The notes under the pieces were generated by a model. That model saw only the letters and a list, made by a program, of their open reading frames with translations, ran no database searches and was not told the DNA's origin. Below are positions 23,116 to 45,520 of a DNA stretch of 64,000 nucleotides, piece after piece. The translations under genes and the position numbers were made by a program. How positions within the stretch are numbered: the first letter of the stretch is position 1; each line of letters begins with the position of its first letter. The stretch is from Anthoceros angustus (lineage: Eukaryota; Plantae; Anthocerotophyta), in assembly GCA_010909165.1 (NCBI GenBank), contig MU008155.1, forward strand, positions 1,736,001 to 1,800,000, written 5' to 3'.

Positions 23116-24904
23116 GTCAACCTAATTGTAATGTGTCTTTCTTGTTTGGGAAAGTGGCTACTTGCAAGCACCCAAACATGGCAACAAATAAACAATCTCG
23201 TCTAACAACCATGTTTCCAAGATTGAGAGAGAGGAGAGGATGTTGAAATTTGCGCGAGATGTGCACTTGCTTTACAAGTGTAGCTCGGACTTCCACATGA
23301 AAAGTTTCTGGAATGACACCTATGAAGCGACCAATTGGAAGACTCTAAGACAACATGTGAAGCAGTTCTTCTACGGATGAAGAGGATCAAGCAAGAGGAT
23401 GAGGATGTCGTGAGCGATACGCACAAGCGAAGAGGTCCTTATACTGGTTTCAAGACCATTTATGGCCTCCTATAGAAGCAAGTGTTAGGAAGCATAGAAT
23501 TTTGGCATTGCATTACCTTAAGACTGCCCATGGAAAGCCGGGGATGGACAATCCATATTCAAGTTGCGTGGATCCTTATACACTTGGTTTGACTCGAAGA
23601 CATGGAGTTGAAACTGCGTACAAGCTTGATTAGTAAAAGTCTGCGACATCGGCCAACTATCAACATTGGACCTTTAGAAGATAGACCTAATTTGAGAAAG
23701 GAGCTTGGTGATTTCTTGAGAACCTTGAGGGATGAGGGAACCAATCAATGCCCCTCTTGTCCAACCCATCTTGAGGGGCATTAATTCAAGCTAGAGCACG
23801 AACTCATTGGAAGCGGAACTTTCGAGTTAGCATTGATTGGAACAAGGAAGTTCATGAAAAGGAACTCTCATGGTCCTACAGAGCATCTACTCTCTGCGAC
23901 TTCTAAGCTCCGGAGACTTGGGAAGATGAAGGAAGAATGATGGCATATAAGTAGCTTACCTCTAGAGCTTATGATATTCAGAACTTGTTGTCAATAGTGA
24001 TCAAACGAAATCCACTTGGTTCTACAAAGGAGAGAACATGGGAGGTTAAAGGACAAAAGACATTAAGGTGTTGATCGCACATACAATCGCATTCGCACCA
24101 CTGCAATTAACGTAAGAAACATGGTAATTTAGGATGCCGAAGGAAAACATGAGATTGATCATGACGGAATCTCAGATCTTGCTATATCAAGAATTGCTGC
24201 TCCCCAACACAATTACCAGTGCTACCATCGCACTACATTTCACAAATCTTGCATTGCTCTCAAACTGCAACAACAAAGTTCCACAATCAATCAAAACACC
24301 TCATGTCCTCTTTTCATGGAAAACTGGCTCATAAGTCCAAATAAGCACCACCTACTTCAAAAATTGTTGATCAACTTATAGTCAAGGACCCATTGCGATT
24401 CTCGATTGCCCTTCACCGAGCAACATTCTCCCTCTCATCGCCAGCTCGAGCTCTCTACGCATCACTCAAACTCCTGCTTTGCGGGCCAGGCGGGCGGATG
24501 CGACTTTGAGGTGTTACGTCCTTCTCATCTCCGGACTCCATCGGTGCAGCCAATAACAGCCTCGCTGTACTGTGATCTCTCGATATACCATTTCTTCTTT
24601 GGCAATTGAGGGCTTTCGACCTCATGAGGCCGCCTTAGCTACCTCTCTACGACTTTCGGCCTCTGTAGCCTCAGTTACTGCGGCGGCTGGCGGAGGCTGC
24701 ATTCTACAACCTCAGCGCCTCCAAAGCAGCCTCGCGAGGTTGCTCCCTTTTCTCTATTTTCGGCATTTTAGACTCCTAAATATTTATACATTCGGCATTT
24801 TAAGCATAATAGTTTTTAGATTTTCAAATTTTACTAATTCTTATTAATTAACGCAGAATCACCCCTCGGGGTCCAGTAGTACATTTAGGAAAAGAGGAAT
24901 GCAC

Positions 24905-25137
24905 CTATTCAAGTAATTTTTAAAATAAATCATAGTATATATTTAAGTCATCCCTAAAATAAATCATAGTATCTATTTAAGTAATCCCTAAAATACATCA
25001 TAGTATCTATTTAAGTAATCCCTAAAATAAATCATAGTATCTATTTAAGTAATCCCTAAAATACATCATAGTATCTATTTAAGTAATCCCTAAAATAAAT
25101 CATAGTATCTATTTAAGTAATCCCTAAAATAAATCAT
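24905..25137. repeat. 34-bp AT-rich tandem minisatellite, about 6.5 copies
   Basis: Unit ATCATAGTATCTATTTAAGTAATCCCTAAAATA(A/C) starting at 24929, 24963, 24997, 25031, 25065, 25099, partial at 25133. Confidence 0.92.
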
Positions 25138-25327
25138 TCTAAAAAAAAACGGATGACTGAGTGGTTTATAAGACCATTAGTAGGATGTTTGAACATTCCT
25201 ATAGAGTTCTAACGTATCGCTATTAATATTCTTGGGTGCAATAAAGAGTACATAAGACTATCAACTTATTGAATAATTAATAATATTCTTCCTATCCTAT
25301 ATAATATGTATCGTTTAGATAATTCAG

Positions 25328-26149
25328 ATATCTTAGGAACAACATTCTGGGGCACGTCTTCAGGTATTTAAACTCTATTCTTCATCTTTTCAACCTTTCG
25401 CACCCTCTAAATTTTATTCCTTATCTCTTCAACCTTTTCCATCTTTCCTCAAATCTTAATATGGCATATTTTCATGGAGTTAGCTTATTATTTTTAATGC
25501 AAAAGCAAAAGTTATGATTCATGATATGCACTTGTGACAGATTCCTTGAACAATGAAGGAAAGGAAAGGTTTCAACGTATAATAAGGGCCGAGGTAAGGA
25601 GAAAAGGAAAGATCATTAACGCAGTACACTTTTCCTCCCATATGTACACCATCAATCTACAAAAACAACTTCGTGGCTGGTAAGTTGTGATGAATGAATC
25701 TTGAGTTGTTAAGTACCAAGTCCCATGATAGGAAAATTCTATTTAAGTGGACTGTGATACACTTCTTCTTCTTCTTCTTCTTGTCCTTACAAAACATATA
25801 TCTGACAATATATGATTGAAGATGGAAATGTGACACCTCTTTTAATTCTTATGCATGCAGCCACTTTAAGACATGGGCTAAAATGATCTTGACGAAAATT
25901 GTGAAGTTCTCGCGAGAAAAATTCGAGGAAGCTTACAAAGTTTTGGTTGATATGGAATTAGAAGCGTATATCCAAAACCGAAGCAAAACAAACATGATAA
26001 CAAGACTTACTTTGCAAATTTATAGGGCTTGTGTATTCATAGATGGTGCTAGGAGCCGTAAAATATACATAGTCGTAATGGCTTCAGGATCCCCTTCCAA
26101 GTTGGAAAAGATTATAGAAGAGTCGAGAGAAGAGGATGTTGATCAATAA
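25328..26149 (+). CDS. Orphan spliced ORF fragment (three exons, about 150 aa), function unknown
   Basis: Exons 25328-25363, 25541-25679, 25861-26149 joined by GT-AG introns with compatible phases give ILGTTFWGTSSDSLNNEGKERFQRII...QLRGCHFKTWAKMILTK...EEDVDQ*; no start exon identified. Confidence 0.4.
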
Positions 26150-27079
26150 TCAGTTCTCTTGTTTTCTCATAAACCACCAAATGGTACACATAGTGTAGTC
26201 AACACATTCGAGTGTCTATGAATATATGTTGAGCATGGGCAAGTTCTTCTAACATCTTCTTTGTTTTGTTTGCATTCTATGAGCACTTGCTTGGAAGCTG
26301 AAGTGAGCTATAGTGCTTCTCGCTATCCCTGCCCCTTTGGAAAATTTTTCCTTTTTTTGGTCGTTTATCGAAGGTTACATTAGAATGCCCTACATGCAGG
26401 CTTAGCCTGTTTTTTGCTTCAAAGTCTGCTATGTTGGTGCTCGTGCGTTAAGATGTATTGCAAGATTCTATCTATAATGTGTATATTATTTTTGTCCAGA
26501 GGGATTGAGTCTTTGTTGCAGATGTGGTTGTAATATACCCTATTCATGACATTGTCACATGAGGTAAGCACTTGAATTCATGTAAGGACTTCCTTAACAA
26601 ACAATCAATTGTAAACAAAACAAATCTAATATGCAAGTAAGCAAACTAACAACCAAATGTAATGGGAAAGTATGGCTCGACATCGCGCACAAACACACTC
26701 CCATGCAGACACGCAAAATCATCATCGCTCTTCCGAGTCGTGGCTTTGGCCTCCTCACAACACTCTTTGGAATTGCATCTGCAGGATAAGCTATGATCCG
26801 AGCTTGTCGCATGTGAAGTCATATACTAAACTCGCATATATTCCTAAGATATCCATTTTGTATGCGGAAATATCCTAAGAATGTTCTTAGGATATTTCCA
26901 AAGATATTGTGTCCAGCTATAGATTTCTTTATCCACTTAGCTATTACTCACAATTCAATTATGATGATCAATTCTTAATTAACATAAGAGTTTAGCTTAA
27001 TTAACGTACATGTTTTAGATTAATTAATGCTAATCAAACACTAAACCCAAGTGCACAGATTAGTGTCACACGGCATGGC

Positions 27080-27275
27080 GCGATCAAGACCATGACCTCC
27101 CGGGATTCGCGGTAGGGGGCAACACCCACAAGTATTCTTGCCCATGAAGGCCAGTGCTTTCATTCCTGTGAAACTTTGGGGCCATGGGCAAGAATTTTTT
27201 TGAGGTTTATCAACGGCTATGCTAAGGCCTACTACATCCGTAAGAATGGGGTAGGCCTCCCCTTATCTTCTCGGT
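27080..27275 (+). mobile_element. CRE-like non-LTR retrotransposon, REL-domain fragment (copy A)
   Basis: ETLGPWARIFLRFINGYAKAYYIRKNGVGLPLSS aligns by eye to IETHGAIGKDFFRLIKDCAQAYHSRRDVVGLPLSS of copy E. Confidence 0.65.
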
Positions 27276-27439
27276 GGGCCCTTCTTCCCAAGAACGCCTT
27301 CGACTCGAGAGGCTTGCCAAACAATTTTAGAATGTTTTTCGAGTGTGGGAGATGCAACATCTTCAACTCATGTGGGTGGTAAGTAAACCCTTCGTTATTC
27401 TAGACTACAACATCTTGGGGGCGATAGACAGCTTGAGGG

Positions 27440-28390
27440 TGAACAATGGCGGACAATGGCGGAGCTAGCCCCCGGGCCTGGGCTGCGGTGCTTGTTCCCC
27501 ACTCCCTCGGTGTACATTGGACTTCCCATGTATGCATTTTTTAAGGGAGCAGGTTCATGGCTTCTTGCTCGACCTTGCATGGAGGCTTTCCAAATAGCAG
27601 CAGCCTCTTTTTCTACCGCAATGAGGTTTCGCCTGGGCCTGGTCTAACCTTTGGCCTGCTCTCTCCAGGGAGCCCCACCCAGTGGGGTGCCCTCGGCGAC
27701 TCGGCACCCAGCACTCATCCGCAGTGGACCGGCGCAGATTGCTACATGATGTCTTTTGGCATGTCATGAGCACATGGAGGGAGGCTTCTTTCCTTGGAGT
27801 ACTTATACTTTCTATACAGTGGGTTTCCTCAGCGGACCTTTTTGTGGAACCGGGTTTGGTTGCAAATGTGGTTGTCACTAACCCTACTTGGGATTTCGTG
27901 AGTGAGCATGTGATCCTCAACCCTCCGGGGTGGGCAGCGGAGGGATGTGCCATGGTGAAGGTTCGTTAGTACTCTCATATGCAGCAAGGGCATGCCTTCA
28001 TCCCCCTTGCCATCCAGATCCATGGGGCCATGCGCAAGGCCTTTTCTAGGTTCCTTAAGACCTATGCTAGGGAGTACCACAACCGCACGAACGGGGTTGG
28101 CCTCCCTTTTTCATGTATCGTGGCTTTCTACACGCAACGGGTGTTCATCGCCCTACAACGGGCATTGGCCAACACGGTGTACAGGGCAATGGCGAGCGCA
28201 GGGTAGGTGGCTTCTTCGGCACCGGTGGTGGTTAGGCCCTTCCGCATCCCCGATTTTGATATCCTTGGTGCAGTAGGCATTTACGAGATTGGCGACAATG
28301 GGGGTTAGTCCCCCATGGTTTGGTGCCCTCTTAAGGGTTGTTCCTCTTCTCTTAGGTAGATGGATTTCCATCTCTTTTTCATAATAAAGT
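27440..28390 (+). mobile_element. CRE-like non-LTR retrotransposon, 5'-truncated (copy B)
   Basis: GAGSWLLARPC...FSTAMRFRLGL, ADLFVEPGLVANVVVTNP, FYTQRVFIALQRALAN; 3' end with AGATGG-ATTT-CCATCT hairpin (28358-28373) and AATAAA (28383-28388). Confidence 0.8.
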
Positions 28391-28743
28391 CTTTTGTTTC
28401 TTCATTTTCATAAAGTCTATACTAGTGAGCATCGTCGGGGAAAAAAAAAAGAAAACAAATCCGTGTCACAAGTCAAGAGAGATCACCTTGGTGCTTGAGG
28501 CGCCCGTCGGGTTACCTGGGGAGGGGTTTACCAGCAGCATAAGAGTTCTTCAGAAAGCAACTTGGCCCGCCTAGCATAATTTGGCGAGCAAGTTTGCCAA
28601 ATTATGCTTGACTCTCCATCACCGTCAATCTCCAGTCTCCGTCCATGCTTGTCAAGCACGCAACGCCGAGCCTTCGAGGTGGCTTACCGGCGCTGCATCT
28701 CTGTCTGACTTAAGATGATAGCTGCAAGACTATTGTTGCAACA

Positions 28744-29581
28744 ATGGACGACAAGAAGTATCTGCCGTTCTGGGGCCACAAGGCGCGCGACGGCAGAGCG
28801 GGAGCAGCCTGCCTGAGCCAGTGGTGGCCCGCGGAGTTCACGGTGGATGGAATCCGGTACGCCACTGCGGAGCATTGGATGATGGCAGCCAAGGCGCGCT
28901 TGTTCGGAGACGAGGCCTCGGAAGCGCTGATACTGGCAGCGAACAGTCCAGGAGCAGCAAAGCGGCTGGGACGGAAGGTGGAACGCTTTCAGGAAGAGGT
29001 GTGGATTCGGGAGCGGTCGGCGTTAGTAGTGCAAGGCAATCTGGCCAAGTTCGGGCAGCATGCGGATCTGGCCGCCTACCTGCTGAGCACCGGAGACCGC
29101 GTGTTGGTGGAGGCAAGCCCTACGGACTGCATTTGGGGCATCGGCCTCTCGGCCACCGATCCGCGGGCGGTGGACCCGCTGCAGTGGCGCGGCCTCAACT
29201 TGCTCGGCTACGCGCTCATGGAAGTGCGCGAGCAGCTCCGCCGCCTCCGTGAAGAGGTACAGCATTATCCCAAGGCGAGCATCGACCGGAGCAAGCCAGA
29301 GCCAGCAAATCATGAAAATTTCACTACATTCACATGCTCTGAATGCCTTCAAGCAGACTGTGCAGGCGGAGGACCGAGCCAGGGCACAGAAAAGCCGCGA
29401 TGGCTGTCGAGCAAGGGAGAAAAGGCTGGCCAAAATTCGCACGAAGGAAACAGGTGCAAAGAAACGAAAGGCTCGACATCTTCTTCAACGAAGAGAGCGA
29501 ATTGAGCTTGAAGCCAGAAAAAGAAAAGATTGGTATGGCACGCCGTTTCGGACACTTGGGTACTCGGGACACTGCGTCTAA
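28744..29581 (+). CDS. Stand-alone NADAR (YbiA/DUF1768) hydrolase of bacterial type, with predicted intron 29257-29356 and K/R-rich C-terminal exon
   Basis: KYLPFWGH, CLSQWWPAEFTVDGIRYATAEHWMMAAKARLFGD, AKRLGRKV, GNLAKFGQ, TGDRVLVEASPTDCIWGIG, WRGLNLLGYALMEVR; GAAGAG|GTACAG...AAGCAG|ACTGTG joins in phase 0 to TVQAEDRARAQKSR...KRKARHLLQRR...HCV*. Confidence 0.85.
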
Positions 29582-30149
29582 GTTTCCGTGGTTTTTTAGG
29601 GAAGTTGCTGCAACACTGGTGCAAACAAGGAAGCCCGACGTGTGGCTGAAGCCGGGTCTCGAATGGCTTCCGATCCCGGGGTTCGAATTTCGGGCCTACA
29701 TGTATTACTATTTTATGCAGAAAACATGGAACATGTTCATTCTAAGGCGTAGCAATGTTTTGCATTAAAAACTGACATTTGGTAAGTTGGACATAAATAT
29801 CTTGGTAATTCTAACTTAATATGTATCTTTAATATTATCATATTTTGTGTTAAAGATATTAAATTTATTCTTTAGGTTGGAATTTTAATGCAATTTTACT
29901 TTAACATTTATTTCCCTTCACACCTACTAGCAGTCCTAACTTAATATCTATGTACCTTTTACAATAATTTATTTGCTTTAAAGATATTGAAATTGTCCTT
30001 TGAGTTGAAATTTTAATATAAAATATAATTTTTTATTTGGAATTTTTATTAGTTTACGTGTGTAGTCTAGTGGGGGCAAGAATTTTTAAGGGTCCATAGG
30101 CCATAGAAGAAGAAGAAGAATTTTATTTAAGTCCACTGAAGACGGATTT

Positions 30150-30365
30150 CTTGCACCAAAGGCATCCACCCACTCCCCTTAGGCACCCCATCTAAGGGCA
30201 TCCACCCACTCCCTTTAGGCACCCCATCTAAGTACCGATCTAAACTCAGGACTTGGTACTTAACAACAAGTACCATGGTGTGCCTAAGCTACTTGCACCA
30301 AGGGCATCCACCCACTCCCTTTAGGCACCCCATCTAAGTACCGATCTAAACGATCTAAACTCAGG
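30150..30365. repeat. 36-bp repeats within a larger local duplication
   Basis: GGCATCCACCCACTCCC(C/T)TTAGGCACCCCATCTAAG at 30161, 30197, 30303; shared flanks CTTGCACCAA and TACCGATCTAAAC. Confidence 0.85.
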
Positions 30366-30751
30366 ATGCTTAATCACGGTGTTCTTATAAATGTGTGTCC
30401 ATTTGGCCTAAGCCATTTGGACCATAGGTGTCCAGGCTCTTAAGGCTTTTATGGCTATCATGGTTTTTTGAGGTAGGACGTTGTCGCATCTACGACCATG
30501 TACGCCATAGCAGCATGCAGCCATGGTTATCTTGGCTCTCACGTGGCCATAAGCGACATCGCACGTGCAGCCCTGGCTGATGTAGCAACCTTAATAAGCT
30601 AGCATGGCTTTCATGGCAGTTTATAAGTATTTACATGTGATTGGAGATAGTTTATGTATGATCCTATTGCACCAAGTTACTACAATGGAAGTCCATGTAT
30701 GGCACGCTGCAGCGCTGTGATGCCCTCTTCAATCCATGAAGAACAAGCTCG

Positions 30752-30855
30752 TGTTATAACTTACAACCCTAAAATTTGGACATGGTCATGTTATAACTTA
30801 TAACCCTAAAATTTGGACAAGGTCCTGTTATAACTTATTACCCTAAAATTTGGAC
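30752..30855. repeat. 37-bp tandem repeat, about three copies
   Basis: TGTTATAACTTA..ACCCTAAAATTTGGAC at 30752, 30789, 30826. Confidence 0.85.
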
Positions 30856-31465
30856 TACCCTCCCATCGCAAATAGGTTCACTCCAAAGCGACTTGGTCGC
30901 CGTGCCACAATGCACCATGACTACGGGAAGGTGCATGCATGGCACGATGTAGCGATTTGGCGGTGTAGAAATACTAATGCAAATGTTTTATCCAGAAATT
31001 CATTAATTAATAGTGATGATCCAACTGGGGCAAGGCAAGATTTTGATGAAGAAGGTAGCATGGATGTACACATGGTAATATCTAGATAGTCCCCTGATGC
31101 ATATTTATTGAATTTAGTAGAGACATCAAATGTAGATGTTTATGTAGACTTTTCGGATGATAAAAACACATTATAGAGAGTTCAAACTGATGACAATAAA
31201 AATGCTCTAACTTTGAAGGAACATGATAGAGTATGAAAAAGGAGTAAGAGATATAAATGGGTAGATAATAAACATCCAAATGTAGATAACATGAAAGTAG
31301 TACCAAAACCATATGTCAGAGTAGCATTAACACGCAAAATACAAAAAGAACTCTTAGTTTACTTATGAATAATTATTACTAGAAGCGAATGATGAATGTG
31401 GTTGATATAGTGGTATGAACATGTGAAGTTTCTGATAGAGTTAAAAAATATAATGTGGTATATGT

Positions 31466-34150
31466 TTTATTCAGGAAAAAAACGATGGGGAAAAACCCAT
31501 CCAGCATAGGACAACGAAGGTGGACCCCAGGGGTCAAGTTACCTACTGCTCCTAAAAAACATCGTATGCAGGAAGAACAAATGACCTGCAAACTACGCAA
31601 GAAGAGGAAGAAGTGTCACCTGTTGTCACTGCCTCGTGAAGGATTGCCGTCTAGAGGGCCCTTTTGAAGGGCAATAGAGACTCGCTATCTGAAGTACACT
31701 GTGAAGTAAGAAAGGGACAACCTCGCGCCATGCGTGCGGGTGTGGTAGGATCTGGCACGGGACTTGAGAAATTGATCGAAGTCCGCAGCCATTGCCCCAT
31801 ACGTTTCGAGTGCAAGCAAAATAAAGAAGTGGTCCACTTGCATCCCGCTATACTTTCTGACCTTGAGAGCTATAGCACCAGCGGCAACCCAACCAGGATG
31901 GATGTTAGTGATAACCTGAGCGGAGATGGTGTCTCGAGCAGGGTCAGTAACCACCACGTCCGCCACCGAAACCTGGTCACCGCGGACAAAGTACAAGTCA
32001 ACCCTGATGGAGCGACCTGTTCGAAGAATGTACGCTCGCTCCCTCTAGGCCATGTACCCGCTTTCACGAGATATGGCAAAGATGACATCGCGGATAGCGT
32101 CATGGGTGGCGATGCGATGACCCCATGGGGACAACGAGCAAGGTGTACCCAGAGTCATCGAGGGTAGAGCCGCACTCGCAAGTAAGAAGGGAAGACGCCA
32201 TAGGCTGAAGCAGGCCAAGACGAAATCGCATCGTAGTGATGAAGGTGGTTGGTGCAATGACAAAACCCCGTATACATGGATGAGCCAAAAGCCAAGCACC
32301 TGAGCCCCTTACCAGAACAAGAGCGAAGCCAAGCTCTCGTGGACCTAGGGATGGAGGGGTCCAAGAGGATGGAATGGAAAGCCTGGCCGAGCTGCTTCTC
32401 AAGCAACAACGCCTACAACCCCCTGAAACCATCGGAGATGAACATCGAGAAAGGAGGAAAATTCCGTCGATTTCGCAAAAAGCATTTCTCTGGCATGCCT
32501 CAATGTAGAGGAAGCAGCCTTGGGAAGGGTCCTGTAGTGGGCGATGGCAAAGAGGGCACTACCCAGAGGGTCGCCTTGTCTGGTACCTGTGGCTGATTCC
32601 AAGACAGAAACAACAAATCCCGAAGAGACGTTCTTGTGTTGATAGTAGAGATTGGAAGACTTCTCGTAGAAGCACCGAACAAAAGGTGTAAGGCTCCCCA
32701 TGAAACCACCAGCATCCTTGAGCTCCTCGAAGATGATGCTCTTGGAAATGGTATTGAAGGCATTTTCAACATTGACCTGTAAAACCACTCACTTTGGGTG
32801 GGTGTCAAGGCATGCCTGCACGGCAAAGACCACGGACTCGCAACCCCCCAGAGTGGCAATGCTAAATTGTAGGAGGTTGAGGTGCCGCTGGAGGAGGAGC
32901 CAAGGGCAATAGTAGCTGAGCCACATGAAGGCTTCCAACCGAGTCGACGTGACATGTTAGAGCCCCGGCGCAAGCTTGTCCACGCCCGAGTGAGGAAAGC
33001 AGAGAGATCCGATGAGGCATTTCCCCTAGTGCCACGGTAGCAGCCAGGGGAAAAAAGAGTAGCGGAAAGCCGCTGGATTGGTCTTCAGAGAGAAAAAGGT
33101 CCCAAAGATGCTCAAACACCATTCCAGACAGCCCAGCATAAGAAAGACATGGGCTGAAGAGAGAGCCAGAACAAAAGCCGCTCGGTCCAGGAAGAAGGGG
33201 TCCCCAAGGACATAGTTGAGTATGTCTAGGGGGATGGCATCCTTCGGGGCTAGATGGAGGGCACGAAGGGCTGCAATGGTCTGCATATAAGCAGGGGCCA
33301 AAGAAAGGGCCAGAGAGCCCTGGCAGCGTGGGCATATTCACCTGCTTGACCTAACAACTTGCATCGTCGTAGGTTCGTTGCCACTCCCGGGGCTTGTTCC
33401 ACCTGCAACGCGGATTCCGCTCGAGCCTTGGAAGCCGGCAATGTCTCCTCCTGAAGAGATGCCCAATCGCCGGCCCGAAAGCGACGGAGGCAACTGGCGA
33501 CCTCCCAATGACTAGAAGCCCCACCCCTAATACAACGTAGACACCGTCCTGGGAGTCGAGCACAAGGCAATGCAAAGGAAGACGGAACGCTAAGAGGGCA
33601 TCATCACGAAGGTGCCTGGGAATCCTGCGAAAGATGCGCGGGCATGGAAAGCGGGTTTCAAACAACCCAAGGATGTGATCCTGTTGAGTACGCAACCAGT
33701 CCCGTGATGAGAGAGGCACCCCTAGAAGCACGACACTGGATGCCGAAACCTGAGCCACGGAGCTAGTGGAGGTCGCAAGATGTACTTGGGTAGCCCAACT
33801 AGTCTGGTCAAAGTCCTTATGCATGTGCCCAATGTGGGTTTTTACCCCCTTAACGCCGCAAGAGAGTTGAGCACAGACTAGACAGGGAGTGTCCTTGATG
33901 GTCACAGAAGGTGTGGACCGCCCCATCGCAGAGAGAAGAAATCACAAAGAGAGAATAAACTGCGGACACCAGCTTGGGGTTGACAAGGCCAAGGAGGCAG
34001 CGGGGACTGGAGACAAAGAGTCCTCGACCTTTACTGGACATACAAAGTTTTAGCTCCGTATAGCGAACCCCAAGAGACCGGCCAAAAGGCCCCGCCTAGA
34101 GGGGATGGCCCACCACCACTAGCAACCTACCAGAGCAGTGCCCGCACCTA
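31466..34150 (-). mobile_element. CRE-like non-LTR retrotransposon, longest copy, internally deleted (copy C)
   Basis: N-terminal C2H2 finger CLVC-x12-HIGHMH (33884-33820); LRRCKLLGQAGEYAHAARAL; QFSIATLGGCE...VVLQVNVENAFN; GTRQGDPLGSALF; CECG..LDDSG, RIATHDAIRD, VADVVVTDP, KVRKY, LALETYG; 3' hairpin 31484-31501 and AATAAA 31471-31466; 5' boundary approximate. Confidence 0.85.
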
Positions 34151-35940: not shown

Positions 35941-36058
35941 CAATTGAAAAGATGTACAAAGATGAATGAGTAAGTAAGTAATTGATTATTAATCGTGCTT
36001 ACAAATGTGTTATTGTGTGCAGATTAAGGGAGAGTGAGAGACCCTTAAATCAGAATCA

Positions 36059-36420
36059 TGATAAGAATACAAAGGAGAGAATCAGAGCATTCTTATTGAT
36101 ATTGTATTACTAAGAATATGACAAGTCTAATGATAAGAATACAAAGGAGAGATAGCATTCTTGTTGATATTGTATTACTAAGAATATGACAGGTCTAATG
36201 ACAAGAATACAAAGGAGAGATTCAGAGCATTCTTGTTGATATTGTATTACTTAGAACATGACGGGTATAAAGACCACAATAAGAAAAGACCACTAAGGTG
36301 GCAAGTAAATATATGACAGGTCTAAAGACCACAATAAGAAAAGATCATTAAGATGGCAAGCAAGAATATGATAGGGCTAAAGACCACGATAAGAACAGAT
36401 AACTAAGATGGCAAAATAAA
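36059..36420. repeat. Two adjacent AT-rich tandem arrays (about 70-bp x3 and 55-bp x3) downstream of the integrase
   Basis: GATAAGAATACAAAGGAGAG-like at 36060, 36132, 36200; AAGACCACAATAAGAAAAGA-like at 36269, 36325, 36379. Confidence 0.8.
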
Positions 36421-36707
36421 AAAGCACAAAGGTGGCAAAGAAAAAGACCACAGGTGACAAAACAGAAGTCCACAAAGGTGGCACAATCAAAGACCATAAT
36501 CTAAGAGTGCACATAAATTATAAAAAATATGGTACCATAATTAGAGTCTGATCACCTCAATATAAAAAGATAAGACATCTTAAAGCAAGATTTGCTAAGG
36601 CACGACAATTGCAACTTGAAGATGCTGAAAGGAAGACATCTTAAAGCAAGATTTGCTAAAGCACAATAATCTCAACTTGAAAATGGTGAAAGGGGTATTA
36701 GGAGTGA

Positions 36708-37290: not shown

Positions 37291-37300
37291 GAAATTTTGT

Positions 37301-37672
37301 TTTATTGAGGGAAAAAACGATTAGAAAAAACCCATCCAGTACGGGACAATGAAGGTAGACCTTAGGTGAAAAGAAGCAACTAAGCCCATGACATAAAGTT
37401 ACCTCTGTACCTAGAACATCATATGCACGAAGGCCTACAAATGACGGAGGAAGAGAAAGAAGAGTCATTTGCCATCGCCACCTGTGAAGGAGGAAGAAAC
37501 GTCATCTACCATCGCCACCTATTGAAGGATTGCCGCCGAGAGGGTCCTTTCAAGGGCAATGAAGACTTGCTGTTTGACGTACACTTGTGAGATAAAAGAA
37601 AGGGACCACACCGCGCCGTGCCTGCGGCTGCAGGCGTGGTAGGATTTGGCACATACTTGAGAAATTGATCGA
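37301..37672 (-). mobile_element. CRE-like element, short 3' fragment (copy D)
   Basis: Closely parallels the 3' end of copy C (QFLK..KSYH, VFIALERT, CCCATCCAG(C/T)A.GG.ACAA.GAAGG); AATAAA at 37306-37301. Confidence 0.75.
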
Positions 37673-40659: not shown

Positions 40660-42265
40660 GATTCTCAACGGATCTCCCCTAGCTCCAACCGAAAGTTGCT
40701 CATGCCCAAATTCAAATCCACCCCACCCAGCGCTCTCGTACTGATGGCAGCAGCCTGAAGGCGATTCAAACTGGACGGCGACCGGCGGCGACTCGCAGAG
40801 CTCGCTGAAATGCAATTCACAGATTCACTGAATCTGAATCTGAGATGCACGATTCAGCAGAATATCACGAGCGGAGCGTGGAAGCTATGTTATCTGTCGA
40901 GATGGACGTCACCCACAAACTTTGCAGAGGCAGCCACGTATGGCTACTGGCTGCCCATGCGAGTGGACGCAGGACACCGAATTTGATGGAGATAAGAGTT
41001 TCATGTCAAAAGCAAGTATTCGCTAACACTCTTCCAAACCCCCATCACACTACATACATGCGTGATCAGTGGTTTCAGATATGGACATAGCTCTTTTGTA
41101 TATTATCACAGAATGCCTTTCTGCTTGGACAGGGTCACAGGGCAGCTGAGGAAGCTAACGTGCAGACGCATGTGACGGCAACTGCAACCGCTGCAAGCTC
41201 TGCGGCTTTCGAGAGCAAGGGGGGAAAGATCGAGGTGATTTATGTAAGGAGAAATAGGAAACAGCAGGGAGCAGGGCCAGTGTCGTCACTTGGCCGTTGG
41301 TCCATTGGCTTTGCTGCGGTCGTCTAATAAAGACGTGTTGCGAAGCTCAAGATTCTCATCACACAAGCCCAACGGCGGGCTCCCCCATTCGCTGCGGCAG
41401 CGGGCTGCCAGTGTCAGATGACAAGCACGGCACTGGCAGTACATGCTGCTTTTAGGGTTTGATCGCAGTCTTGCTTGCACTCCGTCACTCCCGAGCGTTT
41501 TGGCAAGAAAGCAGAATAATGAAGGCACATGTTGTGGCCTGCAAACGTGTGAAAAAGCTGCTTTGCGAGCTGGGCTGGCACTAATATCAATCACAGCACA
41601 GCACAGCGGAGCAGAGCAGAGCACATCCCTCGCCTTCCCCCCCTGGCTGGTGTGTGCCGTTACGCCAAGAAGCCGCCTGCCGCTTTCATCACCTCCACCA
41701 ACAGCACCTGCTCATCAGCTGCTGCTTGCTATATTTGCCCCCCCCCTCTACAGCAGGAGCGCTGTTCTTCATTCGTCACCTTCTTGTCCGAGTGGTGGGC
41801 TTGGCGGGAGCGCGTCCGATTATGTAGGAAGCATGGACTGGGCCGGGGCAGCTGCTGGCAAGCAACGCAGGTGCGGTGCTGCGGGCCAGCGGTACGCAGA
41901 CTGTGAGCTTCTGCCCGGGTGTGCTCGTTGCAGCAGCGCCGGCAAGGTGGATGGTGGCAGCAGGGGCCAGAGCTTGTGGCATTTTTGCGCACCAGTTGGG
42001 TATGGCTCGCATTTGCATTTGTTTGTGTGAAGTTGGCATTGCAAGGTTTTCTTCGGCAATGCAAGACTTTCTGCTGCCGCCAGCTGGATAGTTTGTCGAG
42101 GTGCTCACATTTTCTTCTGGCGTGTGTTGTTTGCCTCGGAAACAGAGTCGGCACGGCGGCTGGTCGTCCAGTGGGTGGTGGGTTTGTGGGCAGAATGAAT
42201 GCTGGCTGACCGACGCCCGGCATTGCTGTCGTGTGGGGCTCAGCCCTGCCCGGCTTTCGCACAAA

Positions 42266-45200
42266 ATGCAGGCGCTTCGCAGGATTGTGGCGCTTCTCTT
42301 CCTGGCCATTTTGCAGTTGTATGCCCTTGCCGACCCTTCTGACGCCGACCTGCTTCTGGACTTCCTCCGTGGGATAAGCAGTAATGCGCAGGCTCTGGTG
42401 TCGTGGAATGTGAGCAGCGTGGATGGAAATGGGTGTCCGCAAGGCTGGTCGGGAGTGAGTTGTTCTGAGTACGGAAGGGTGGTGGGACTTGACCTTGGCG
42501 GTTTCTCATTGGGTGGCCAGATCTCTCCGAACTCGCTTGGCTTTCTCCAGCAATTAACATCCCTCAATTTGTCTCACAATTTCTTCTCGGGGGGTGTGCC
42601 AGATGATTTTGGGTCACTGTCGGCCCTCGAGTCTATGGACCTATCATTTAATGGGTTTGTGGGAAACATCCCCATCTCTCTCCGAAATCTGCAGACTCTC
42701 AAGAATTTGTCTCTGGGCAATAATCAGTTTGACGGTGGGATCCCTGATGAGGTTGCGGGTCTGCCTCAGCTGCTGCAGTTGGACTTGAGCCACAACCTGC
42801 TGTCAGGAGGCATTCCTCCCTCTCTGGGCGACCTTCGCAACCTTGTCTCGCTCAATCTGTCCTTCAATGGTTTGTCAGGCATGGTTTCGTTTGATGGGTT
42901 TTTAGCGCTTGAGGTCCTGGACCTTCGCGGAAACAACTTATCAGGCGATGTGGATCAGTCCTGGTTGTCGATGCCACTGGTCAAGACAGTGGATTTGAGC
43001 AGCAATATGCTGACAGCGAACGTCTCATGGCTGATTTATCCTAGCCTTCCTTCAAGCTTGGAGTATCTCAACTTGAGCAACAACAACTTCAGTGTTGCGC
43101 TGAGCAGTCCTGCCGCAACCTTTTTCTCAGCTTCTTTGGAGGTACTAGATGTGAGCCACAATCAGTTTACTGGCCATCTGCCAAGCATTAAGCTTGACCG
43201 AGCCACCACGTTGCGCTTTGGCAATAACAATTTCAGTGGGAGGGTGCCTTCAGAACTGTACAGTCAAGTTCCTTTGAAAGAGCTTGATCTCAGTGCAAAT
43301 CAGTTCGCGGGGCCAATGGATAAAGTCACGTCCACAACCTTGAGGATCCTGAATCTCTCTTCGAATCGTCTACTGGGCAAGCTGCCATCGAAGTTTGAAA
43401 GCATTAGTCTGGTGGATCTGAGCAGAAACAACTTTTCAGGGAGTGTCTCCGACATCTCAGGCTGGGGATCTACAATGGAGGTGATAGATCTCAGTTGGAA
43501 CTCTCTCACTGGCCCACTACCTGATGATGCACCTGCTTTTCTTGCTGCTTTGCGGTCGCTGAACCTTTCTCATAACAGTCTCTCTGGTGAGATCCCCTCG
43601 GGGTTTACTAATTTCACCCGACTGGAGGGCCTTGATTTGAGTTCCAATTCTCTAGACGGGTCAGTTCCTGCTTTTCTCTACAACTTGTCTATAACAAGAC
43701 TAATTCTTTCAGACAATGCGTTCACTGGGAGTATCGACTTTCCAGATTTTGGGTCTGCTGCGGTGATCCTATCACCACTTGTTGCTGTGAATCTATCCAG
43801 TAACCTGTTGACCGGCCCTATTCCTCCTTTGTTGATGTATTTTCCTAATCTTTTTTCGCTAGATCTGAGCAACAACTCATTAAGCGGGCCTATTCCTTCT
43901 AACTTGTCAAGCCTTCAGGACCTACATGATCTTGATCTGTCCTTCAACCAGCTTACAGGCCCCATTCCTAGTGACCTTGGACTGATTCCTGGTCTGATTG
44001 GATTGAATCTGTCCAACAACAACCTCTCTGGGACGCTGCCTGCAAGCCTGGAGAGGTTCCCTCTTTCCTCTTTTGCAAACAATCCACTGCTGAAGCTTCG
44101 GAACGGTTCACCCATATCTGGGTCTGGTGTTTCACATGGGGAGAAAGGGAAAAGATCTGCTGTTGAAGCAGGTCTAATAGGTGGCTCCACTGCAGCAGCA
44201 GCTATTCTTCTTGCTGCAGGACTCTTTCTGTACTACAGGAACATGTCAAAATCACAGGTGGTCATGGCAAGGAGTCCTGAATATATTGGGCGCATCAAAT
44301 CAGAACACAATCACCTGAGGGCAGGTGGCTTGCAGGAGAACGAGTCTGGCTCACCATCAGGGTCAGAAACTGCAAGCTCTGGGACTGTGAAACTGAAAGG
44401 TATTTTGAAGGGCCATAGCTACCGAGCCTCGCCAGAACCCGCTGTTGAGGAGCCCAAGAGTGTAGAAGGCAATGGCAAGTTGGGTGTCCCTTTACCAGTT
44501 CCTTTTGTGCATCTGCAGCCTCAAGGTTATGGTGAGGCAGTGCCACCAGAGCAGCCAGTCGTCCTGAGAGTGTGTTCACCAGAGCGACTTGCAGGAGATT
44601 TGTTTTTGCTGGATTCTAGCTTAGTGTTTACAGCAGAGGAGCTGTCCAGGGCTCCCGCTGAAGTGCTCGGCAGGAGCAGCCATGGAACGTCTTACAAAGC
44701 AACTTTGGACAGTGGCCATGTGCTTACTGTAAAGTGGCTCAGGGAGGGATTGGCGAAGAGTAGGAAGAAGTTTATAGGGGAGGCCAGGAAGTTCGGGAAT
44801 GTGAAGCATCCCAATGTCATGGCGTTGAGGGGATACTATTGGGGCCCGAGGGAGCATGAAAAGCTTTTGGTTTCAGACTTTATTCCTTCAGGCAGTTTGG
44901 CTGGGAGGCTTTACGAAAGGACAGGCCGGAGATATGCACCTTTGAGTTGGCAACAACGTCTCCGTATTGCAGTGGATATTGCACGTGGTTTGAACTACTT
45001 GCAACTTGAGCACCAGTTACCCCATGGTAATTTGAAATCTACGAATGTATTACTGGATGGGCCTAATCTTGATGGTCGACTTGCTGACTTCAGTCTGCAC
45101 AGGCTAGTCACTGAAGCAGGGACGGCAAACACTATCTTAAATGCTGGAGCTCTCGGCTATCGGTCATCAGAACTTGCTTCGGCGAAAAAACCGAAACCAT

Positions 45201-45520
45201 CGTTCGAGGCTGATGTATATGCATTTGGTGTTATACTCATGGAGATCCTCACAGGCAAAGGTGCAGGGGATATCATATCAGGTAATTCTGGGGCAGTTGA
45301 TTTGCCTGACTGGGTCAGGCTTCTAGCGAACGAAGGACGAGCGGTGGATTGCTTCGATCCAGCTTTGGTTGGCGTGCATAGAGACCAGGAGCCTCCTAAG
45401 GGGATGGATGACATGTTAGCAATATCTTTAAGCTGCATTGCCACTCGATCTTTGCGGCCAAACATTAGGGTTATTTACGAGAAATTGGCTGCTATTAACC
45501 CGTCTTCACAATCTGATTGA
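42266..45520 (+). CDS. LRR receptor-like pseudokinase, GHR1/SIRK1-like, single exon
   Basis: Signal peptide MQALRRIVALLFLAILQLYALA, LRR cap CPQGWSGVSC, many LxxLxLxxN repeats, TM helix, EVLGRSSHGTSYKATLDSGHVLTVKWLREG, LRGYYWGPREHEKL, HGNLKSTN, ADFSLHRL (non-canonical HRD and DFG). Confidence 0.93.
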   Translation: MQALRRIVALLFLAILQLYALADPSDADLLLDFLRGISSNAQALVSWNVSSVDGNGCPQGWSGVSCSEYGRVVGLDLGGFSLGGQISPNSLGFLQQLTSLNLSHNFFSGGVPDDFGSLSALESMDLSFNGFVGNIPISLRNLQTLKNLSLGNNQFDGGIPDEVAGLPQLLQLDLSHNLLSGGIPPSLGDLRNLVSLNLSFNGLSGMVSFDGFLALEVLDLRGNNLSGDVDQSWLSMPLVKTVDLSSNMLTANVSWLIYPSLPSSLEYLNLSNNNFSVALSSPAATFFSASLEVLDVSHNQFTGHLPSIKLDRATTLRFGNNNFSGRVPSELYSQVPLKELDLSANQFAGPMDKVTSTTLRILNLSSNRLLGKLPSKFESISLVDLSRNNFSGSVSDISGWGSTMEVIDLSWNSLTGPLPDDAPAFLAALRSLNLSHNSLSGEIPSGFTNFTRLEGLDLSSNSLDGSVPAFLYNLSITRLILSDNAFTGSIDFPDFGSAAVILSPLVAVNLSSNLLTGPIPPLLMYFPNLFSLDLSNNSLSGPIPSNLSSLQDLHDLDLSFNQLTGPIPSDLGLIPGLIGLNLSNNNLSGTLPASLERFPLSSFANNPLLKLRNGSPISGSGVSHGEKGKRSAVEAGLIGGSTAAAAILLAAGLFLYYRNMSKSQVVMARSPEYIGRIKSEHNHLRAGGLQENESGSPSGSETASSGTVKLKGILKGHSYRASPEPAVEEPKSVEGNGKLGVPLPVPFVHLQPQGYGEAVPPEQPVVLRVCSPERLAGDLFLLDSSLVFTAEELSRAPAEVLGRSSHGTSYKATLDSGHVLTVKWLREGLAKSRKKFIGEARKFGNVKHPNVMALRGYYWGPREHEKLLVSDFIPSGSLAGRLYERTGRRYAPLSWQQRLRIAVDIARGLNYLQLEHQLPHGNLKSTNVLLDGPNLDGRLADFSLHRLVTEAGTANTILNAGALGYRSSELASAKKPKPSFEADVYAFGVILMEILTGKGAGDIISGNSGAVDLPDWVRLLANEGRAVDCFDPALVGVHRDQEPPKGMDDMLAISLSCIATRSLRPNIRVIYEKLAAINPSSQSD

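Follow-up and report, generated by a model that had tools for sequence, protein, structure and literature searches.

How did a gene of bacterial type come to lie among plant genes in a hornwort, and what might its product do there? The gene in question stands in a 64,000-nucleotide stretch of the Anthoceros angustus genome (contig MU008155.1 of assembly GCA_010909165.1, positions 1,736,001 to 1,800,000 of the forward strand; hereafter the window), for which a program-made list of open reading frames (ORFs) gives an ATG-initiated ORF of 253 aa at 28744-29505 (+). This gene is real and intact, and its first 171 codons (28744..29256, +) encode a NADAR domain with the core YbiA-like fold. We consider it quite likely that it is a nuclear gene of the hornwort that arose from ~ 0.5 kb of an actinobacterial NADAR gene, of the group to which SCO5665 of Streptomyces coelicolor belongs, with a core kept under constraint and a product that is a probable base-ADP-ribose hydrolase. 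The transfer itself is already known, having been published in 2020.

Profile, fold and active site all place the protein in the NADAR superfamily. The Pfam profile PF08719 (NADAR/DUF1768) covers residues 9-166 at profile positions 2-163 of 163, with an E-value of 1.6e-52 and 178.5 bits against a curated cut-off of 35.1 bits, and with TIGR02464 (NCBIfam 'riboflavin biosynthesis intermediates N-glycosidase') the score is 167.3 bits, the cut-off being 73.7; this model is a domain-level equivalog that cannot separate the SCO5665 group. The nearest PDB structures by sequence are 8bau, a NADAR of Phytophthora nicotianae (E 1.6e-23), and 2b3w, the YbiA of E. coli (E 1.8e-13). When an AlphaFold2 (AF2) model was compared with PDB using Foldseek, significant fold matches were limited to the same two entries (E 2.4e-10 and 6.5e-9, respectively). 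In the model, built on an alignment of 44 sequences, most of residues 20-120 and 150-170 have a predicted local distance difference test score (pLDDT) higher than 90. The active-site residues W10, S25, W27, E43, K50, K73, E123, S125, D128 and W131 are all kept, and E43, K50 and E123, that is, the active-site Glu, the Lys and the acid of the last strand, are invariant in the homologue alignment and pair with E43, K50 and E125 of 8bau; the catalytic residues are those established for the NADARs of Phytophthora and E. coli C7 (PMC11543638). An initial annotation, made from the letters of the window, had described the domain as intact, GC-rich and intron-free, and so it proved, with a full PF08719 match over one ORF and a GC content of 0.65 in the domain-coding segment (28744-29256, exon 1 in what follows), where GC at third codon positions (GC3) is 0.78. 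Weak matches (E ~ 2e-5) of residues 3-90 (28744-29013) to the Phytophthora RxLR effector PSR2 (PDB 5gnc and 9j5i) were also seen; no single stretch of them reaches the threshold and they are probably spurious.

As to the source of the gene, protein matches number more than 8000, and the 120 best among them, 173-225 aa long and 64-72% identical, are either stand-alone NADARs of actinomycetes, Streptomyces included, or proteins from soil metagenomes; the best 80 loci in bacterial assemblies taken at one genome per species are nearly all from Streptomyces (62-70% identity). A search of 1.84 billion cluster representatives returned 15,561 relatives, none above 65% identity, the nearest named cluster being that of S. 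aculeolatus / S. phytophilus. No plant protein appears among the best 120 matches of a word search with exon 1 or the best 150 of the representative search, in a database from which the hornwort's own protein is also missing. A metagenome scan likewise gave no hornwort copy, its best match (72% identity) lying on a contig with a GC content of 0.75 that is bacterial. In a careful maximum-likelihood tree the window protein falls in a 24-row clade of named Actinomycetota, with an ultrafast bootstrap (UFBoot) of 99 and a Shimodaira-Hasegawa-like approximate likelihood ratio (SH-aLRT) support of 97, while the NADARs of abalone (a mollusc), amphioxus and dinoflagellates stand outside the actinomycete clade. 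After the removal of long-branched rows, a quick tree still held the protein within the actinomycete group (SH-aLRT 84-92). One quick tree set a long dinoflagellate pair beside it with a support of 0, which we treat as noise. On this sequence evidence, the gene is a horizontal acquisition from Streptomyces-like actinobacteria. The initial annotation had proposed as much, taking the gene for a stand-alone NADAR of bacterial type, distinct from the plant riboflavin-fusion type, and naming protein search and phylogeny as the way to check it; both the type and the horizontal origin are supported, the latter by nesting among Actinomycetota, with eukaryotic NADARs outside, and by bacterial-like DNA that stops at the domain borders. 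The sister of the window protein in the careful tree (100/88) was P0136, a 353-aa protein on an ENA contig of 2301 nt, with a branch of 0.97, an odd composition and 60% identity; its 155-aa leader, rich in A, R, P and S, could reflect a start called too far upstream in a high-GC bacterium, or it could be a eukaryotic leader.

The transfer was published with the genome of A. angustus (Zhang et al. 2020, Nat Plants; PMC7027989), in a paper that reports 19 genes acquired by horizontal gene transfer (HGT), with three families from Actinobacteria, and from whose list candidates without transcript support were excluded. There AANG001420 (Suppl. Fig. 77) is given as a DUF1768/PF08719 gene, 'intronless', lying on scaffold4 among plant genes and grouping in a well-supported clade with Actinobacteria, and is ascribed to an Anthoceros-specific transfer. 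The window locus is very probably AANG001420 or its orthologue, matched by family, donor and description rather than by coordinates: the Pfam family, the actinobacterial donor, the nuclear location among plant genes and the single-exon domain are the same. Beyond PMC7027989, our literature search found no paper linking NADAR/DUF1768 with Anthoceros. The 2020 paper does not go into function, donor genus or the remodelling of either terminus; what is added here is that the donor group is that of the positional orthologues of SCO5665, and that the gene looks constrained.

The connection to SCO5665 comes from gene order. The nearest Streptomyces loci share a conserved arrangement of solute-binding protein, aldehyde dehydrogenase, NADAR, DUF4190 protein, adenosine deaminase and GDPD, while in S. 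coelicolor SCO5667-70 encode a transporter of PotF type and SCO5666 encodes an aldehyde dehydrogenase (PMC5403932). Since the order at these loci matches SCO5667-SCO5666-SCO5665, the neighbouring NADAR would be the positional orthologue of SCO5665. The ten residues named for SCO5665, W53, S69, W71, E87, K94, K117, E167, S169, D172 and W175 (PMC12945103), correspond one by one, with identical spacing, to the ten active-site residues of the window protein listed above, the Glu of the last strand included. From synteny and residue spacing we infer that the window protein belongs with the SCO5665 group and not with the YbiA, phage or DarG1 types. In vitro, SCO5665 strips guanine- and cytosine-linked ADP-ribose (ADPr) that ScARP and Scabin, two secreted toxins, have put on DNA and RNA, and E167 is essential for this (Mikolcevic et al. 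2026, Toxins; PMC12945103). By homology, the hornwort enzyme too probably takes ADP-ribose off the bases of DNA or RNA. The plant protein differs from SCO5665 in being ~ 65-72% identical to the group, in lacking an N-terminal part of ~ 43 residues, in carrying a new C-terminal extension of 82 aa (or 74 aa), and in being eukaryotic and nuclear-encoded, with an activity that is argued from homology. The best solved-structure match, the P. nicotianae NADAR (8BAU; Schuller et al. 2023, PMC11543638), is 37% identical, has its E43, K50 and E125 in common with the window protein, and is likewise an orphan eukaryotic NADAR, one that hydrolyses guanine-ADPr; it belongs to another lineage, at far lower identity than the actinomycete proteins, and has N-terminal and internal insertions of its own. 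The DarG1-type antitoxins (DarT1-NADAR) share the superfamily and the guanine-ADPr chemistry, but they have a last-strand Asp, a beta-beta-alpha N-terminal extension and an adjacent DarT1, whereas the window protein has Glu123, no such extension and no toxin neighbour. No ADP-ribosyltransferase (ART) gene was found within the 64-kb window or at the donor loci. At the Streptomyces NADAR block (e.g. L008:935-7326) the gene is accompanied by a PotF-like binding protein and polyamine/nucleoside catabolic genes, with no adjacent ART.

Both ends of the gene look rebuilt. The start codon lies in a strong eukaryotic context, gcaacaATGG, with A at - 3 and G at + 4 (28738..28747, +), downstream of an in-frame stop at 28711-28713. 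In the alignment with bacterial homologues this ATG falls inside their coding region, since their proteins begin 15-40 residues earlier, and M1 of the plant protein sits opposite a Gly conserved at 95%. Three ATGs lie upstream, at 28604, 28645 and 28715, and the main ATG has the best context of all; the one at 28715 opens an out-of-frame upstream ORF (uORF) of 33 codons that overlaps the main start codon (28715..28816, +) and would be relevant only if transcription starts further upstream. A perfect 13-nt palindrome with a 10-nt loop (arms 28573-28585 and 28596-28608) precedes the NADAR start by 136 nt; it could be a promoter element, a remnant of a transposable element or chance. At the other end, the alignment to bacterial proteins stops at about residue 166-171, and past codon 171 the DNA changes to a GC content of ~ 0.5, purine-rich and with no similarity found to anything. 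There the ORF reads on for 82 codons and a stop that have no bacterial counterpart (29257..29505, +). The tail so encoded is mildly basic (pI 8.8, net charge + 3.0) and its residues 190-253 have a pLDDT of 43-58, i.e. are predicted to be disordered. We conclude that the C-terminal extension, whichever form it takes, is young, host-derived sequence gained on loss of the bacterial stop. The intronless model of 253 aa, favoured on the strength of the literature and of the lack of coding signal in the tail, is most likely the correct 3' end and is our default.

Other accounts of the locus have to be weighed. It could stem from contaminating bacterial DNA or a chimeric assembly, or it could be an ancient plant NADAR passed on by vertical descent; the best matches are all bacterial and the gene forms a GC-rich island amid AT-richer surroundings, as the first of these would have it. 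Against this, a comparison of 27001-31000 with Streptomyces NADAR genes by blastn and tblastn found a sole stretch with DNA similarity, 28755..29244 (+), at ~ 70-72% identity, with a faint extension to 28717 when tblastn was run with two homologues, so that ~ 490-530 bp of the window are bacterial-like and the remainder is plant DNA. Both ends of the bacterial gene are trimmed, with the N-terminal 15-40 residues and the stop codon missing, and its GC3 of 0.78 has shifted from the mean of 0.93 in 80 Streptomyces orthologues towards the 0.51-0.78 of host ORFs in the window. No bacterial genes lie beside it, and the same 64 kb holds plant genes, namely a leucine-rich repeat (LRR) receptor kinase, a WD40 gene, a BTB/BACK gene and a methyltransferase. 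The protein nests in Actinomycetota, apart from eukaryotic NADARs, which speaks against vertical descent, and the transfer was reported independently in the published assembly. Because the insert is 0.5 kb only, with trimmed ends and a GC3 near that of the host, and shares its 64 kb with plant genes, contamination is ruled out as far as sequence alone allows, and we find neither it nor vertical inheritance credible. Alternatively, the locus could be a silent relic, an integrated bacterial fragment that by chance is still open and that the plant does not use. The databases searched hold no transcript-derived protein, the tail is not coding-like in any frame, there are upstream ATGs, and the stretch is repeat-rich without near neighbours, all of which a relic would share. 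The core does not look like one, however: 45 of the 46 columns that are invariant in 120 actinomycete homologues are kept, the exception being a conservative F-to-Y change, and 74 of 78 columns conserved at 95% or more are kept, while the variable columns have changed, with the majority residue present in only 23 of 63. When Streptomyces genes were allowed to drift neutrally in simulation, with AT bias, to the observed GC3, they took ~ 89 substitutions and the ORF stayed open in 5% of runs, even with indels not counted. The terminal branch of the window protein is not long either, at 0.26-0.38 against medians of 0.42-0.56. Since conserved columns are kept, neutral survival of the ORF is rare and the terminal branch is not elongated, we read the core as having stayed under purifying selection. 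The good start context and the filtering of the 2020 list for transcript support also go against a silent fragment, which we regard as very improbable.

If the gene is used, the next question is in what form and for what. The initial annotation had proposed a phase-0 GT-AG intron of 100 nt directly after codon 171 (29257..29356, +), followed by a second exon of 74 codons and a stop (29357..29581, +), rich in K and R; the peptide it would encode contains KKRK and RKRK motifs. A transcript spliced at 29256/29357 would then give 245 aa, with a helical, K/R-rich tail that might guide the enzyme into the nucleus or onto nucleic acids. The sites are there, with GT at 29257-29258, AG at 29355-29356 and a frame open until the stop at 29579-29581, and 100 nt is close to the usual length of short introns in Anthoceros. 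The spliced tail would also be strongly basic (24 K+R among 74 residues, pI 11.1, net charge + 14.6) and, folded alone, it is predicted as one long charged helix, as such sequences usually are; in principle a tail of this kind could stand in for the lost N-terminal nucleic-acid-binding region. Nothing, however, singles these sites out as those of an intron. The donor, GAG|GTACAG, has no G at + 5 and the pyrimidine tract before the acceptor is weak, dozens of other GT..AG pairs within 29150-29630 also preserve long ORFs, and the composition of 'intron' and 'exon 2' is alike (GC 0.48 vs 0.52). All three forward frames are open over 29343-29505, where the DNA is purine-rich (0.59) and two of the three frames encode strongly basic peptides, the other such frame, 29343-29768, having a net charge of + 14.8; by eye, a number of splice models seem plausible there. 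A codon-usage score, trained on four host ORFs of the window, a small set that makes for a weak test, reaches + 0.26 bit/codon in exon 1; of the tails, the read-through one scores - 0.06, the spliced one - 0.07 and that in the third frame + 0.04. The published model has no intron, a Pfam search of the tail found no family, no homologue of it was seen, and neither the 253-aa nor the spliced 245-aa product is among the entries of the protein database searched. With many alternative GT..AG pairs and a codon score below zero, the basic spliced tail finds no support as a targeting device, and a protein of ~ 28 kDa needs no nuclear localization signal to enter the nucleus. We thus hold splicing to a targeting tail to be doubtful, and return to the uninterrupted 253-aa protein. 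For its activity, small-molecule housekeeping has to be considered, in which a YbiA-like N-glycosidase would destroy excess or damaged riboflavin intermediates or some other nucleotide-like metabolite. E. coli YbiA and the fused plant NADAR domains share with the window protein the superfamily, the fold, the Glu-type active site and a TIGR02464 score above the cut-off; the last-strand catalytic residue is Glu, as in YbiA, the Streptomyces orthologues adjoin polyamine/nucleoside catabolic genes (aldehyde dehydrogenase, adenosine deaminase) and not a toxin, and the physiological targets of orphan NADARs are left open by those who studied them (PMC11543638). On the other side, YbiA is more distant (E 1.8e-13, 31% identity) than the P. 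nicotianae NADAR (E 1.6e-23), and the window gene is stand-alone, outside the plant NADAR lineage and in no riboflavin context, no link to RibA, RibD or PyrR having been found in the window and no rib neighbours at the Streptomyces orthologues. Plant NADAR domains are reported as fused to other functional domains and tied to flavin biosynthesis (PMC11543638), and nucleic-acid activity was shown directly for SCO5665 (PMC12945103), with whose group the window protein is placed. A housekeeping role is thus possible, though we lean against it. The preferred reading, that of an SCO5665-group hydrolase acting on base-linked ADP-ribose, has to carry several points that weigh against it. The TIGR02464 score is one. 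Another is that a conserved bacterial N-terminal helix region (EL......G.R before the FWGH motif) is absent from the plant protein; in SCO5665-type NADARs the N-terminal flanking helices and loops help form a proposed electropositive nucleic-acid tunnel (PMC12945103), and the plant enzyme, lacking this segment, may handle substrate differently. The exact sister is unstable across trees (P0014 in one, P0136 in another, the 0-support dinoflagellate pair in a third), the orthology is drawn from synteny and residue spacing rather than from comparison with the SCO5665 sequence itself, and it is the 2020 paper (PMC7027989) that vouches for the gene model and its expression.

With domain, fold, residues, bacterial origin, integration and constraint all observed at the locus, a course of events can be proposed. 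About 0.5 kb of a Streptomyces-like gene of the SCO5665 group would have entered the hornwort nuclear genome, the insert losing both the N-terminal extension and the stop codon of its bacterial source. The plant gene would then have started at a new ATG in good eukaryotic context, and its single uninterrupted ORF would have run into host DNA, most likely giving a protein of 253 aa made of a 171-aa enzyme core and a disordered, non-conserved tail. Under purifying selection the core would have retained every residue shown to matter in SCO5665 and the Phytophthora NADAR, and since it keeps these residues it should still act as an ADP-ribose hydrolase, i.e. an N-glycosidic hydrolase that removes ADP-ribose from guanine, and probably from cytosine, in DNA or RNA. 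That activity is suggested by homology, and any physiological use would be a step further from the sequence; the most attractive role is detoxification, in which the enzyme would undo the ADP-ribosylation of nucleic acids by toxins of the ScARP/Scabin type that actinomycetes secrete.

Protection against DNA ADP-ribosylating toxins, already raised in the initial annotation, is a plausible idea, made stronger by the orthology to SCO5665, and it has precedent. A protective role of eukaryotic NADARs against actinomycete genotoxins has been proposed (PMC12945103), and the same paper cites ladybird beetles in which horizontally acquired NADARs act in immunity, supported by RNA interference (Yang et al. 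2025, as cited in PMC12945103). As described there, the beetles parallel the hornwort in being eukaryotes with bacterial NADAR genes for which protection against bacteria is proposed; they differ in being animals with an independent transfer. A fuller version could be envisioned in which the hornwort took the antidote to ScARP/Scabin-type genotoxins from the very lineage that makes them, rebuilt both ends of the gene, acquiring a new start and a basic tail, likewise new, that is perhaps spliced and perhaps a replacement for the lost N-terminus, and now uses the enzyme in immunity or repair. Taken as a whole, this is unlikely. If true, it would give plants their first example of a toxin-reversal enzyme gained by horizontal transfer, a parallel to the NADARs of ladybirds. 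The picture of HGT into plants is unchanged, as the transfer is already on record. To our knowledge, nobody knew the function of this NADAR group when the transfer was published in 2020. Work of 2023-2026 has since shown that its bacterial orthologue removes guanine- and cytosine-linked ADP-ribose put in place by toxins that Streptomyces secretes, and this may open a functional reading of the hornwort gene. What had been an anonymous 'DUF1768 HGT' would become a functional lead, a directly testable idea about nucleic-acid protection in an early-diverging land plant that lives among soil actinomycetes.

The surroundings of the gene had been described at the outset as decayed plant transposons. 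Repeats and ORFs without Pfam matches in the flanks lend this loose support, while the recognisable neighbours are ordinary plant genes. Pfam searches with ten flanking ORFs (27.5-28.3, 31.6-33.6 and 40.4-42.0 kb) gave no matches. A tRNA-derived short interspersed nuclear element at ~ 29600-29700, suspected from a GGTTCGAA box, was rejected: ARAGORN found none, and Rfam gave only a sub-threshold match to IRES_Bip. A pair of 45-nt inverted repeats (25734-25778 and 30105-30149), 78% complementary and partly (GAA)n, bounds a 4.4-kb segment that holds the NADAR gene, and could be due to chance or represent the ends of a non-autonomous element. Downstream, two direct-repeat pairs of 75-80% identity (31463-31664 and 37298-37550) lie ~ 5.85 kb apart, as would the long terminal repeats of a decayed retrotransposon; the ORFs between them have no Pfam match. 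Tandem arrays flank the region, one at 24871-25176 with about nine copies of a 34-bp unit and another at 36058-36700 with several units of 55-72 bp. Downstream of the NADAR gene, the closest gene that is clearly of plant type is at 42101-45520, where an uninterrupted ORF of 1139 aa encodes an LRR receptor-like kinase with an LRRNT, many LRRs and a kinase domain.

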